A DNA stretch of 63,743 nt, filler included, from Octopus bimaculoides (lineage: Eukaryota), in the NCBI RefSeq assembly GCF_001194135.2. It is 4 parts of 4 records of this genome, joined end to end, with 100 filler letters (N's around TTAATTAATTAA, not from the genome) between each part and the next. Parts side by side here need not be neighbours in the genome. Positions count along the whole stretch, not along the records: positions 43,894 to 52,465 come from NC_069002.1; 3 more parts are not named here. One strand, written 5' to 3'. The position numbers and the translations under genes are program-made. A model generated the notes under the pieces. That model worked only from the letters and a program-made list of their open reading frames with translations, had not been told where the DNA came from and did not search any database. The stretch's first letter is position 1. Each line of letters opens with the position of its first letter. Of this stretch, positions 45,248 to 52,258 are shown one piece after another.

Positions 45248-45457
45248 GAAACATTATCCGAAGACAACGTACGGGATCTACTCGATTTCCTTCTCTTAGA
45301 ACAGAAGAAAGCCAAAGAGGAGGGTAACGAAGAAGTACAGACATTCCTCAGCGACAACACAATAGGGCATATTGTATACGAACTGTTCGGCGGTGGCATT
45401 GAGTCTACCACGATGACCATTCTATGGTTTATAATCTATCTACTGCACAACCCAGAG
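45248..45457 (+). CDS. CYP17-like: Cytochrome P450 (CYP17-like) internal exon containing the I-helix; equivalent to vertebrate CYP17A1 exon 5
   Basis: Acceptor ctatcctttccag|, donor cccagag|gtaagt. 210 nt, phase 0/0, open frame ETLSEDNVRDLLDFLLLEQKKAKEEGNEEVQTFLSDNTIGHIVYELFGGGIESTTMTILWFIIYLLHNPE. Matches the clan-2 P450 I-helix pattern (D/E)xFGAGxETT..W...LLHxP. Confidence 0.95.
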
Positions 45458-45566
45458 GTAAGTCCTCCTCTCTCTCTCTCTCTCTCTCTCTCTCTCTCTC
45501 TCTCCATACACACATACGCACACACATATATATTCCTGTGTGTGTGTGTGTGTGTGTTTTATCTCT

Positions 45567-45915
45567 TATCGTTTATCGTTTACTTGTTTCAGTTATCTGT
45601 CTGCGGCCATGCCGGAGCACCGCCTTGGAGGGTTTTGGTCGAACAAACCGACTCCAGGTCTCATTTTCTAAAGCCTAGTGCTCATTCTATCGGTTTCTTT
45701 TGGCCGAATCGCTAAGTTAAGGGGACGTAAACACACCAACACCGGTTGTCAAGTGGGGTGGGGAAACAAGCGAAGACACACATAGGTATGTACATACATA
45801 CATACATACTTACATACGGGCTTCTTTCAATATAGACATAGTAGAAGACACTTGCCCAAGATGCTACGCAGCGGGACTGAACCTGGAACCACGTGGTTGG
45901 GACACGCGCCCACAA
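45567..45915 (-). mobile_element. SINE family B in P450 intron
   Basis: tacttgtttcag...gcggccatgccggagcaccgcc...gctaagttaaggggacgtaaacacacc...(TACA)n...gacacttgcccaagatgctacgcagcgggactgaacc. Confidence 0.85.
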
Positions 45916-46426
45916 ACATATTCCTTCATACACATATAATCTTTCGCTTTCTTTGTCTCTCTCTCTCTCTCTCTCTCTCTCTCTCTCTCTCTCTCTCTCT
46001 CTCGAAGTATGAGGACAATTTATACTCCAATACAATACAATCCAGCCACCGGTTCAACTACCACCTTATCACTACCATCAACAACAACTTCACTATCAAC
46101 ATCATCACCAACACCATTCCCACGCCAAATATCTTCTATTTTGAGTGCCAACAACGAAAGCCACTACACTGTTGCCTGTCCTGCTTGAAATAGCAGCTAA
46201 AATTCCCACAAGCTATACCCTACAGTCTTAGAATATAACCTAATAGGTAATGTGCTTCTGAATCTCTGAACATGAGAATCGACGAGAGTGTCACAATTGG
46301 AATACTTGTGAGCATCAGTCTACCAATCTGCTCAACTAGGATTAACTTAGGACTACCGATTTATCGTTTCGATAATTTATTATTAAGTATTGATTGTTTA
46401 TTTTTGTCGTTTTGTTTCGTTTACAG

Positions 46427-46596
46427 TGGCAAGAAATTATATCTGAGGAAGTGCGACTAAGAATTGAAACCACAGGACCTTTATCTCCTTTTGATCGCAA
46501 CTGTTGTCCAAACTTAGACGCAGCCATCAAGGAAACATTAAGATTGGCATCTGTATTGCCTCTCGGTTTCCCACACAGATTAATGAAAGACACCAC
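46427..46596 (+). CDS. CYP17-like: CYP17-like exon containing the K-helix ExxR; equivalent to CYP17A1 exon 6
   Basis: Acceptor tttgtttcgtttacag|, donor caccac|gtgagt. 170 nt, phase 0/2, WQEIISEEVRLRIETTGPLSPFDRNCCPNLDAAIKETLRLASVLPLGFPHRLMKDT. Contains the KETLR motif. Confidence 0.96.
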
Positions 46597-48621
46597 GTGA
46601 GTAATTTTGCTTGTCCATTTTATATCATTGGTTAGCCAGGTGAGAAAGGGCAGCTTTCCCATGTCCCTTTTCCAGGAACTCTTTGAGCGGAAACTAGCCT
46701 TAGTTATAGAGTTGGCCATCTGAATGCTTGCAACGGAGGGAACTCAGTGATAGAGACCTTGAAGAACCAGTTGGTGGCGTTCAAAGTAGACTAATAAATT
46801 AATTCAGTTGTGGTCCGCTGAATCCCAAGCTGGGACCCAATGCTGGGTCCTTATCTGAGATTCAGAAGACGGCATCTTTTGGTATTATGTAGTACCGTCC
46901 AGTTCGGTGGTTGGTATAGCTTTTAATTCCAACGTTGAGAGATAGACCTTGCAGGATCATCCATATGTATATGTATATGTATATGTATATAGATAGATAG
47001 ATAGAGAGAGATGTCTGTATGTACAAGTGTGTTTATATGTATATATGTATATATATGTGTGTGTGTGTATATATAGATATATATATATATCGATACATAC
47101 ATATATATATATATATATATATATATATATANNNNNNNNNNNNNNNNNNNNNNNNNNNNNNNNNNNNNNNNNNNNNATACTACATACACACACACAAACA
47201 CATATACACAAGAATTACGGAATGGAGTTGGTAAGATCCAGGTTACATATGTTTCATAGCTGGTGGAGCCTCAGAAATGGTAAAAAAAAATCCAAGCGAG
47301 TGGTATACCACCGGCTACTCTTCAGGCCAAGGATATCTTGATTGAATTAGGGGTTACACTGTCGCGAGGAGATTACATGTTGACGCATGGAAGATTCTGG
47401 TGCACAAACGCACACTCTATACACATTTATCTATATATGTGGTTATATCTGATTAGGTATTTCTGTCAATAACCTAAATACGTATACAAATTCACGCGCG
47501 CACACACACACATGCGGATCATACAATGACACAAAAAAAAGACAACTAATAAAGAGAGATGTGATCATTAGCGAGGTACTAGTATCGTCAATGTCAATAA
47601 GCTGCCTTCTCTTTATTCCGGCACTTCTACAGTTAATGCTAACCGCCTCCACCTCCTCCTCACCTCCCACTCTTTTTTTCCTCAGTCCTCCGCAGCCTCC
47701 TCCTTCCGCTCTCCTCCTCTACTGCCACTTCTAGTGTGTCTCCTCCCTTTCATCGACTCCTTTGTGTGGACGGTCTGCTGGCTGGCATCCCTGGGTTAGC
47801 AAAAAAGAAAAAAGAAAAAAAAAAAGATCTATTGAAATTTGTGTGTGTGTGTGTGTGTGCGTGCGTATGTGTGTGTGTGTCTGTGTGTGAGTGTGTGTGT
47901 GCACATACATACACACATATATAAATAAATGTGTGTGTGTGTGAGTGAGTACGCATATATATATAATGTATACGCATATAGACATTTATATATCTATACA
48001 TACGTATATATATATGTATATATATGTATATATATATGTATATATATATGTATATATATATGTATGTATATACATATATATATGTATATAGCTATGTATA
48101 CAAATATATGTATGTGTGTCATTATATGCAGATATGTATTTGTGTGTGTGTGTGTGCATAGACACATACTTATACTATATCTAATATAAAACACACACAA
48201 CCACATATACATACATTCGTACATAAATGTTCTAACTATATAGAGCATTATGCCTCTGCGATACTAGTGTTCCGCAGTTCTCAAACTACCCGACCGTCCC
48301 ATCACATCCTTTGTCAACGTACCCGTGGAATGGAAATAGATGGTGGCGATTGGCATATAGTGTATATATATATACCCATATGTACATGCCAAATTATACC
48401 CCACCAATCATTATCATCCGTCATATTCACTAAGCACACTGGAACTCTTGTCCTGCGTAGAAACACAAACATCATTTTCTTTACACATATATGTCATACG
48501 TGTGACATGTGTGTGTGTGTGTGTGTACATATAGAAAATCTAGGAAATCTACAGCAAAGTCCAAAGGATGTTCACAGCTACTTTTTAAAGTTGACACTCG
48601 AAAGAAGGGATATAGATACAG

Positions 48622-48658
48622 AGTATAACGTTTCGGTTATAGTCCTTCATCAGATACT
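48622..48658 (-). ncRNA. Minimal type I hammerhead ribozyme inside the P450 intron (antisense)
   Basis: Minus strand reads AGUAU-CUGAUGA-A-GGACUAUAACC-GAAACGUU-AUACU. Perfect 5-bp stem I, intact core, palindromic ACGU stem III, weak 2-bp stem II. Confidence 0.75.
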
Positions 48659-50635: not shown

Positions 50636-50721
50636 ATTATTATTATTATTATTATTATTATTATTATTATTATGTTACTGATGGTGTCAATCATGTTTGT
50701 TTATTCATTTGTGTATTCCAG

Positions 50722-50825
50722 AGTACGGGGGTACCACATTCCTGAAGATAGCATGGTAATACTGAACATCTGGGCAATACACCATGACCCAAATGTATGG
50801 GAAGACTCGTACACGTTCAATCCAC
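50722..50825 (+). CDS. CYP17-like: CYP17-like exon leading into the PxRF meander; equivalent to CYP17A1 exon 7
   Basis: Acceptor gtgtattccag|, donor aatccac|gtgagt. 104 nt, phase 2/1, (T)VRGYHIPEDSMVILNIWAIHHDPNVWEDSYTFNP. Frame-compatible with both neighbouring exons. Confidence 0.96.
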
Positions 50826-50951
50826 GTGAGTATACCAGTGGGGCTAGATTTTTTATTGTTGTTATTGTTGTTGATTAGGTGGCCCGCACACACAACGCAC
50901 ACATACACACACACACACACACACACACACACACACACACACACATGTAAA

Positions 50952-51815
50952 TACGTGGTGGTATCAAAACATTCCCAGACTAGTTCTGTAACGTGCCAAC
51001 AGATGGCAGCACACTGTTGCGTGCGCAGTGAGAGATAGCAGTGACTTTCATGAGGCAGTGTGCCGAATGACATCGCCGTTGTGAAATTTGTGTGTTTTTG
51101 TAATCACGTGTATTACTGCTGTAGTCTGCAATTTTTGTCTTGGACAGGAAGTTGGAACAAATAGCCAACGTGAAATTTTGCGTTAAACTTAGGAAGTCCG
51201 CTACAGAGACATTGAGCATGCTTTGGCAAGCTTACGGACACGAGGCAATGGGTCGTACATAATGTGTCGAATGGCACGGGTGCTTCAAGAGCGGAAGAAC
51301 ATCCCTGGGGAGACGGTGAGCGATCTGGAAGAAATGCCAGGAACGTCAATACCCAGAAATGTGGTATCGTGTATCGAGCACTCATCCCACAGGGCCAAAC
51401 CGTCAATCGAGAGTTCGACCGCAACGTTTTGAAGCGTTTAAAGGAGAACATTCGGCGAAAACGACCGGATCTGTGGAGCGCGAAGAATTGGATTCTCCAC
51501 GAAGATAATGCCACTGAGTTCTCCTCGTCACCGAGTTATACTCACTCGTAACTTTCCCTTCAAAACAAAACATAGTGTCGTTCCTCACCTGCCCAATTCG
51601 CTAGATTTAGCGCCTGCAGATTTCCATCTCTTCCCCAAGATGAAAATGCAGCTCATATGTCGCCGTTTCAACACTGTTGTCGAGATTCAGGGCGAATCGC
51701 AGAAGGTATTCGGCTCGTTTACGTGAAACGGTTTCTAGGCCGGATACCCCAAAGTGGTAGGGACACTGAAACTGGTATATTGCTGCGCAAGGGGACTATT
51801 TCGAAGGAGACTGAA
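50952..51815 (+). mobile_element. Defective mariner transposon in the last P450 intron
   Basis: Left end TA+CGTGGTGGTATCAAAACATTCCC is mariner TIR-like. Translated pieces: [92 protein letters not shown]. Has stops, frameshifts and an internal deletion; right TIR not seen. Confidence 0.92.
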
Positions 51816-52022
51816 TTTTTCCTAATAATAATATTGTATACGACTTGAGATGTTTGTCTTGCCTTAACGTTTGTTGTCCTCTTTAACAATTATATATATA
51901 TATATGTATGTATGTAAGTATGTATGTATGTATGTATGCGTATATACGCACACACATTCCATTTCACCCTATTTGTCACTGCTTTAATTAACAAACTTTT
52001 TTCTTCTGCTTTTGTCCAATAG

Positions 52023-52258
52023 GAAGATTCCTGGATCCACAAGATCAAGGCAAGAGTTACCTCCCTTTTGGTTTGGGACATCGAGTTTGTGTCGGCTCCT
52101 CCGTAGCCAAAATGGAAATTTTCATGTTCTGTGCCTACCTAGTAACGAACTTTGTATTCACATGCCCCAAGGGGGAACCACTACCAGACGTTACAGGTCG
52201 AGCTGGTTTGACCATACGGCCAAAACCTTTCAAAATCTGTTTAAAGAGAAGGCTGTGA
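52023..52258 (+). CDS. CYP17-like: CYP17-like terminal coding exon with the heme-binding cysteine; equivalent to CYP17A1 exon 8
   Basis: Acceptor ttttgtccaatag|, phase 1, (R)RFLDPQDQGKSYLPFGLGHRVCVGSSVAKMEIFMFCAYLVTNFVFTCPKGEPLPDVTGRAGLTIRPKPFKICLKRRL*. FxxGxRxCxG with Cys at 52088-52090; TGA at 52256-52258. Confidence 0.97.

Follow-up and report, generated by a model that had tools for sequence, protein, structure and literature searches.

An octopus cytochrome P450 gene fragment with CYP17/CYP21-type intron positions and a divergent predicted steroid pocket

Introduction

The synthesis of vertebrate-type sex steroids in molluscs is disputed, and 'CYP17A1' transcripts are often cited in its favour. 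Among molluscs, CYP17A1-like is the most studied steroidogenic homologue, with genes that are annotated in genomes and widely cited (PMC12965858). CYP17A genes have been described in scallop (PMC12467099) and a CYP17A1 transcript in the oviducal gland of Octopus maya (PMC8976471); in the annelid CYPome a CYP17/21 member was not found (PMC4229089). Elsewhere among animals, CYP21 is vertebrate-specific and amphioxus has CYP17 and no CYP21 (PMC3184775), and the cnidarian families CYP3094 and CYP3349 are basal to CYP17/21 (PMC8110760). Our search of the literature found no paper arguing from intron positions that the mollusc genes belong to CYP17/CYP21. Here we describe a cytochrome P450 gene of Octopus bimaculoides (assembly GCF_001194135.2), of which the last four coding exons lie at 45248-52258 of the window, the whole stretch of DNA that was analysed (63,743 nucleotides (nt), filler included), on the piece that comes from record NC_069002.1 (43894-52465). 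These exons show the intron positions of CYP17 and CYP21 genes, and most of the residues aligned with steroid contacts of human CYP17A1 are changed.

Results

Gene structure and intron positions

The octopus gene carries a CYP17/CYP21-type gene structure. Our analysis reproduced the four exons of 210, 170, 104 and 236 nt, with phases 0/0, 0/2, 2/1 and 1/stop, at the very positions given for them in an earlier reading of the DNA without database searches (the sequence-only reading). The gene model is as follows:

45248-45457, + strand: coding exon, 210 nt, phase 0/0, equivalent to CYP17A1 exon 5, with the I-helix FGGGIESTT at 45386-45412
45458-46426, + strand: intron, 969 nt, phase 0, after LLHNPE, with CT/TC microsatellites and a repeat like a short interspersed nuclear element (SINE) at 45576-45753
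46427-46596, + strand: coding exon, 170 nt, phase 0/2, equivalent to CYP17A1 exon 6, with the K-helix ExxR, here ETLR, at 46532-46543
46597-50721, + strand: intron, 4125 nt, phase 2, with three assembly gaps, microsatellites and SINE-like copies
50722-50825, + strand: coding exon, 104 nt, phase 2/1, equivalent to CYP17A1 exon 7, with WAIHHDPNVW at 50771-50800
50826-52022, + strand: intron, 1197 nt, phase 1, splitting the first Arg codon of PRRF and homologous to human CYP17A1 intron 7 (after c.1243)
52023-52258, + strand: last coding exon, 236 nt (233 plus TGA), phase 1/stop, with the haem-binding loop FGLGHRVCVG at 52067-52096 and the codon of the Cys ligand at 52088-52090
52288-52293 and 52314-52319, + strand: two AATAAA hexamers, candidate polyadenylation signals by sequence only, 30-60 nt past the stop

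A polypyrimidine tract and AG precede each exon, and the donors are GTAAGT or GTGAGT; the first exon, 45248-45457, is bordered by the acceptor ccag and the donor gtaagt. Spliced together, the four exons make 720 nt, or 239 codons and a stop, with no internal stop codon. It is the intron 46597-50721 that contains the three assembly gaps (47132-47176, 48982-48991 and 50220-50345). Over the junction of the 170-nt and 104-nt exons (PHRLMKDTT/VRGYHIPED) the protein aligns with CYP17A1 of human and zebrafish without a break and with no residue missing, and therefore the assembly gaps conceal no coding sequence and leave the frame unaffected. An exon hidden in an assembly gap was considered and rejected, the protein alignment being colinear across the flanking exons.

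For comparison with other clan-2 P450 genes, each protein was placed on its own genomic DNA by exact spliced match, since mapping with tblastn had overlooked short exons. The coding exons obtained, in nt, are:

Bird CYP17A1 (the gene adjoins BORCS7): 324/139/230/87/210/170/104/266
Amphioxus CYP17-like: 228/204/267/87/210/170/104/254
Frog CYP21: 235/90/155/96/111/87/210/170/104/269
Scallop orthologue: 708/87/207/170/104/233
Sea-cucumber CYP17-like: 684/288/167/104/245
Nematostella CYP17-like: 346/464/249/420
Actinia 'CYP1A1-like': intronless
Salmon CYP2U1: 451/319/335/162/168/179
Bird CYP1A5 (partial): .../127/90/124/87/304
Gastropod CYP2B4-like: 388/152/144/283/441/188

Human CYP17A1 likewise adjoins BORCS7. 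Five of the mapped genes, those of the sea cucumber, scallop and amphioxus together with frog CYP21 and bird CYP17A1, share every one of the three octopus introns by alignment column and phase. Four of them also share the acceptor at 45248 in the same manner; the exception is the sea-cucumber gene, from which that intron has been lost. The intron-position alignment that the sequence-only reading had called for thus shows three introns and one acceptor coinciding with those of CYP17/CYP21-type genes. Bird CYP17A1, frog CYP21, scallop and amphioxus each have an exon of the very same 170 nt, and a 104-nt exon occurs in all the CYP17/CYP21-type genes mapped. That the exon sizes and phases are of the CYP17A1 type, as the sequence-only reading had claimed from human values, is borne out by the 87/210/170/104/266 pattern of bird CYP17A1 mapped from genomic DNA, and the proposed correspondence of the introns after LLHNPE in octopus and LLHNPQ in CYP17A1 is correct. 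Of the human boundaries given in that reading, c.1243 is documented as the final base of exon 7, exon 8 including c.1246 (PMC9532611). Our literature search for human CYP17A1 splice variants at c.753, c.969 and c.1139 found none, with c.1243+6 alone documented. On the PDB-verified human sequence the four boundaries lie between K251 and E252, between Q323 and V324, in codon S380 (phase 2) and in codon E415 (phase 1); c.753, c.969 and c.1139 fall at the aligned places of the directly mapped introns of bird CYP17A1, and c.1243 is the position of the last octopus intron.

In bird CYP1A5, salmon CYP2U1, the gastropod CYP2B4-like gene and Nematostella, no intron coincides with an octopus intron in both codon and phase. 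CYP2U1 and the gastropod CYP2-like gene share positions of their own, namely a phase-1 intron in the Gly codon of the haem loop and an N-terminal phase-1 site. The CYP17/CYP21-type and the CYP2-type positions each span protostomes and deuterostomes, and therefore both structures were distinct before that split. Because frog CYP21 has the same pattern (87/210/170/104/269), the signature marks the CYP17/CYP21 lineage and not CYP17 alone. The claim that this is a CYP17-lineage gene with introns kept since the bilaterian ancestor is accordingly supported, except that these introns are not specific to CYP17.

Two side observations concern introns in the compared genes. One salmon CYP2U1 intron lies in the aligned codon of the phase-2 octopus intron (46595-46596/50722), but in phase 1, and could be either a one-base slide from a common ancestral intron or a coincidence. 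From the CYP17-like genes of scallop and sea cucumber every 5' intron has been lost, the first exons measuring 708 and 684 nt, and the 3' introns have been kept; in the sea cucumber the 87-nt exon is fused with the next into one of 288 nt.

Protein family and nearest relatives

The predicted 239-residue product is the C-terminal half of a P450, matching Pfam p450 (PF00067) at profile positions 230-462 of 462 with an expectation value (E) of 1.4e-63 and 215.8 bits (cut-off 22.8). The C-terminal P450 signatures are complete: the I-helix FGGGIESTT, ExxR (ETLR), a PERF-type PRRF split by the last intron, and the haem loop FGLGHRVCVG. Among proteins of solved structure, zebrafish CYP17A1 ranks first (187.6 bits) and zebrafish CYP17A2 second (182.5), followed by human CYP17A1 (139), CYP2R1 (137.4), CYP1A1 (136), CYP2D6 (133) and CYP21 (133/130). 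When 1.84 billion representative proteins were searched exhaustively with HMMER, the nearest was a scallop 'steroid 17-alpha-hydroxylase/17,20 lyase-like' protein, with 62-63% identity over 238 amino acids (Argopecten irradians XP_069139176, Pecten maximus XP_033740529). All other relatives are at or below 42% (about 38-42%), and include bird CYP17A1, amphioxus CYP17-like, the 'CYP17-like' proteins of Hydra and Nematostella, Saccoglossus 'CYP18a1-like' and CYP2U1. Identity to CYP17 of human, zebrafish, bird and amphioxus is 33.9-39.9% for the octopus fragment and 31.2-37.6% for the full-length scallop orthologue, so that both fall short of the 40% that nomenclature asks of the CYP17 family. 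A CYP17 profile outscores a CYP2U1 profile by 19 bits on the octopus protein and by 39 on the scallop one, and scores 3 bits lower on a gastropod CYP2-like control. Two proteins that are 73% (P0228) and 100% (P0249) identical to human CYP1A1 carry the species names Yersinia pestis and Citrobacter freundii, almost certainly through host DNA contamination of bacterial assemblies.

Selective constraint

Only at 52020-52259, over the last exon give or take 3 nt, does the window align with a Logan contig (L001, run ERR3431203) that comes from another cephalopod-like genome. The alignment is gapless at 77% nucleotide identity, with the same acceptor and stop codon, and over its 77 codons the ratio of nonsynonymous to synonymous substitution (dN/dS) is 0.046, with dN at 0.10 and dS saturated. 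This ratio, together with the 62% identity to bivalves, shows long-term purifying selection. A pseudogene was accordingly rejected, the frame being intact and dN/dS as low as 0.046.

Sequence phylogeny

Neighbour-joining (NJ) trees with bootstrap were built from three sets, 147 taxa with 238 C-terminal sites, 96 taxa with 488 sites, and 22 named full-length proteins, the last with scallop as stand-in for the mollusc gene. On the 147-taxon set, every replicate (100%) joins octopus to scallop. The smallest clade that contains both together with vertebrate CYP17 leaves out CYP1 in 65% of replicates, CYP2U1 in 68% and CYP21 in 39%, and a place for octopus within vertebrate CYP17 is seen in 0.5%. 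With the 22 full-length proteins, a CYP2-type clade without the scallop gene has 77-83% bootstrap support and a chordate CYP17 clade without molluscs 76-80%. These trees put the mollusc gene neither within chordate CYP17 proper nor within the CYP2-type clade. The protein did not group with CYP1 or CYP2, nor did the CYP17A1 exon sizes turn out to be wrong. Such sequence data fit the intron result without being enough to establish it, and our conclusion is not rested on the trees.

Steroid pocket

The residues that contact steroid or abiraterone in human CYP17A1 were taken from a published list (PMC6027421). The numbers kept are:

Octopus fragment: 3/12 (G301, E305, V366)
Scallop orthologue, full length: 5/23
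Bird CYP17A1: 17/23
Hagfish CYP17: 16/23
Amphioxus CYP17-like: 15/23
Frog CYP21: 8/23
Salmon CYP2U1: 7/23

Relative to human, the octopus pocket changes are G297Y, D298E, A302G, T306S, A367L, L370G, I371F, V482L and V483T, and the scallop protein is identical at these places; it also has N202V, where Asn202 is the hydrogen-bond partner of the steroid 3-oxygen. Arg347, a site for lyase activity and b5, is kept, as is Glu305, and Arg358 and Arg449 are replaced by Lys. Judged by these aligned positions, the mollusc pocket is no more CYP17-like than the pockets of P450s that are not CYP17. With most steroid-contact residues changed, 17-hydroxylase/lyase activity is therefore not implied; it would be possible, at a low probability, and is not indicated. 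The bearing on vertebrate-type steroid synthesis in molluscs that the sequence-only reading had seen in this gene thus proves to be a weak link and finds no support in the sequence.

Repeats and flanking features

Upstream of the first exon lies a further gap of 497 N (44568-45064), flanked by a 42-base-pair minisatellite at 44414-44566 (3.6 copies) and 45066-45223 (3.8 copies) with 94-96% matches. The array stops 24 nt ahead of the acceptor at 45248, and the gap probably sits within a single long minisatellite array. The 87-nt upstream exon was sought in 43894-45247 and not found. Inside the intron 50826-52022, at about 51140-51800 on the + strand, there is a decayed transposase of Mos1/mariner type, broken over several frames, with matches to HTH_48 (E 0.006, 51140-51262) and to a Transposase_1 DDE fragment (E 5.9e-5, 51264-51551). 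Two families of dispersed SINE-like repeats, at 43910-43997/50485-50572 (90% identical between copies) and 45576-45753/48803-48971 (78-85%), have copies ahead of the gene as well as within two of its introns, and an ARAGORN scan of the piece, these repeats included, found no transfer RNA. Rfam matches to microRNA families (mir-297, mir-3149 and mir-466; at 47033-47101, 47845-47923, 52378-52455 and other places) were rejected as artefacts, being far under the gathering scores and lying on TA/TG microsatellites.

Discussion

We consider it highly probable that these four exons (239 codons) are the 3' half of an intact and constrained cephalopod microsomal P450, orthologous to the bivalve gene, and that they belong to a CYP17/CYP21 lineage of clan 2 which was present, with today's introns, in the protostome-deuterostome ancestor. 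CYP21 is vertebrate-specific, so the mollusc gene predates it. Since amphioxus has CYP17 without CYP21, the mollusc gene is best viewed as related to the gene ancestral to both vertebrate CYP17 and CYP21. Several observations weigh against this reading. In identity CYP2U1 is almost equally close, at 39-40% to the fragment and 33% to the full-length scallop protein. The bootstrap figures for excluding CYP1 and CYP2U1 fall to about 31-33% on 488 sites and 96 taxa, and the NJ trees recover no clade of the intron-sharing genes and leave the deep branching without resolution. Conceivably, the shared introns are older and go back to the ancestor of a larger section of clan 2. The window, moreover, carries the 3' half only, the 87-nt exon and all coding parts upstream of it being absent, so that intactness concerns the four exons, and we found no transcript evidence for the octopus gene.

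Going by what is known of the family, the product would be a haem-thiolate monooxygenase with Cys184, by fragment numbering, as the haem ligand within FGLGHRVCVG, and with protons expected to be delivered by the I-helix acid-alcohol pair, here Glu-Ser in place of Glu-Thr, and electrons presumably donated by NADPH-P450 reductase. That the octopus and scallop proteins are so strongly conserved suggests that the substrate is fixed, endogenous and lipophilic, and not a xenobiotic, and the protein is probably a conserved monooxygenase with an endogenous substrate. As the predicted pocket differs from that of chordate CYP17, the enzyme probably departs from 17-hydroxylation of pregnenolone or progesterone in its substrate or in its reaction geometry.

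It is conceivable, though unlikely, that the octopus gene encodes a true functional CYP17, acting as 17-alpha-hydroxylase/17,20-lyase on pregnenolone or progesterone in the gonad, oviducal gland or optic gland. The octopus optic gland reportedly raises pregnenolone and progesterone synthesis after mating. The intron positions, which put the gene in the CYP17/CYP21 lineage, would fit such an enzyme, as would the top solved-structure matches, which are CYP17, and the retention of Arg347 and Glu305 with Lys at 358 and 449. So would expression in related animals, since the Octopus maya transcript annotated as CYP17A1 reaches its highest level in the oviducal gland at the time of fertilisation (PMC8976471) and the scallop CYP17A genes are expressed according to gonad stage (PMC12467099). 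However, the octopus fragment differs from human CYP17A1 at nine of its 12 steroid-contact positions, and scallop, with N202V, keeps 5 of 23 against 15-17 in chordate CYP17, 8 in CYP21 and 7 in CYP2U1. In the literature we found no enzymatic assay of any mollusc CYP17-like protein, and a 2025 review stresses that homologues are no proof of identical substrates (PMC12965858). Broadening the proposal to any mollusc enzyme that, despite its remodelled pocket, works as a steroid 17-hydroxylase/lyase or modifies C21 steroids in another way still leaves it quite unlikely. If it were true, the bilaterian ancestor would already have had a core step of vertebrate-type steroidogenesis, and octopus would employ this enzyme in its reproductive or post-reproductive steroid signalling.

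An ordinary xenobiotic-type clan-2 P450, CYP1- or CYP2-like and only superficially similar to CYP17, seems extremely improbable to us. Such an enzyme would account for an identity to CYP2U1 that equals the identity to CYP17, for a human CYP17A1 score barely above those of CYP2R1 and CYP1A1, for a CYP17 profile so generic that the gastropod CYP2-like control scores 220 bits on it, and for the large full-length NJ tree without resolution. Yet three introns and an acceptor match the CYP17/CYP21 type and none matches CYP1A5, CYP2U1 or the gastropod CYP2-like gene, the latter two having CYP2-type positions in common, and 62% identity between cephalopod and bivalve with a dN/dS of 0.05 is unlike detoxification P450s of fast turnover. 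We also regard as very unlikely a truncated or dead copy, of which the 3' exons alone survive with a fortuitously open frame. The absence of upstream exons from the piece, the 497-N gap and minisatellite immediately upstream and the transposon debris throughout the introns could be read in that way, but the 239 codons run over four exons without stop or frameshift, the splice sites are perfect, the catalytic motifs are all intact and purifying selection against the second species is strong. The piece, furthermore, starts 1.35 kilobases before the first exon, while introns here reach 4 kilobases.

What these results do is to separate ancestry from function. The mollusc gene would be a genuine ancient relative of CYP17 and CYP21, for which introns, as rare genomic characters, are clearer than ambiguous trees. 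Its presence or expression should not count as proof of 17-hydroxylase/lyase activity, the chordate CYP17 pocket being non-conserved. The intron signature, in addition, offers a cheap and alignment-independent marker by which clan-2 P450s in invertebrate genomes may be sorted. The gene is already known in kind, and our additions are modest, namely the explicit argument from intron positions and the non-conserved steroid pocket.

Comparison with known systems

The cnidarian clan-2 genes (CYP3094/CYP3349, including Nematostella and Hydra 'CYP17-like' and Actinia 'CYP1A1-like') resemble the octopus gene in sequence, with 39-41% identity, the top profile score of 240 bits and the position of nearest NJ neighbours. 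They differ from it in structure, the Nematostella introns lying elsewhere and the Actinia gene being intronless, and so lack the CYP17/CYP21 signature. Vertebrate CYP21 shares the intron columns and phases with octopus, the last five exons in frog being 87/210/170/104/269, but it has 36-38% identity and a lower profile score (194 vs 232 bits). Vertebrate CYP17A1 (PDB 3RUK, 4R1Z) is like octopus in its P450 motifs, in the three introns and the first acceptor by codon and phase, and in Arg347 and Glu305, and the bird gene has identical exon sizes of 210/170/104. It is unlike octopus in that identity is 34-40%, that nine of 12 contacts are changed, with Thr306 replaced by Ser, and that octopus lies outside the chordate CYP17 clade.

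The 17-alpha-hydroxylase/17,20 lyase-like genes of bivalves (scallop CYP17A, Thitiphuree et al. 2019) come closest. The scallop belongs to another class and has a single first exon of 708 nt, whereas the 5' part of the octopus gene lies beyond the piece. The intron positions and phases are identical, identity is 62-63%, and exon sizes are 207/170/104/233 in the bivalve against 210/170/104/233 in octopus. The two genes are also the same in the pocket residues Y, E, G, G, E, S, V, L, G, F, L and T and in the I-helix FGGGIESTTMTI.

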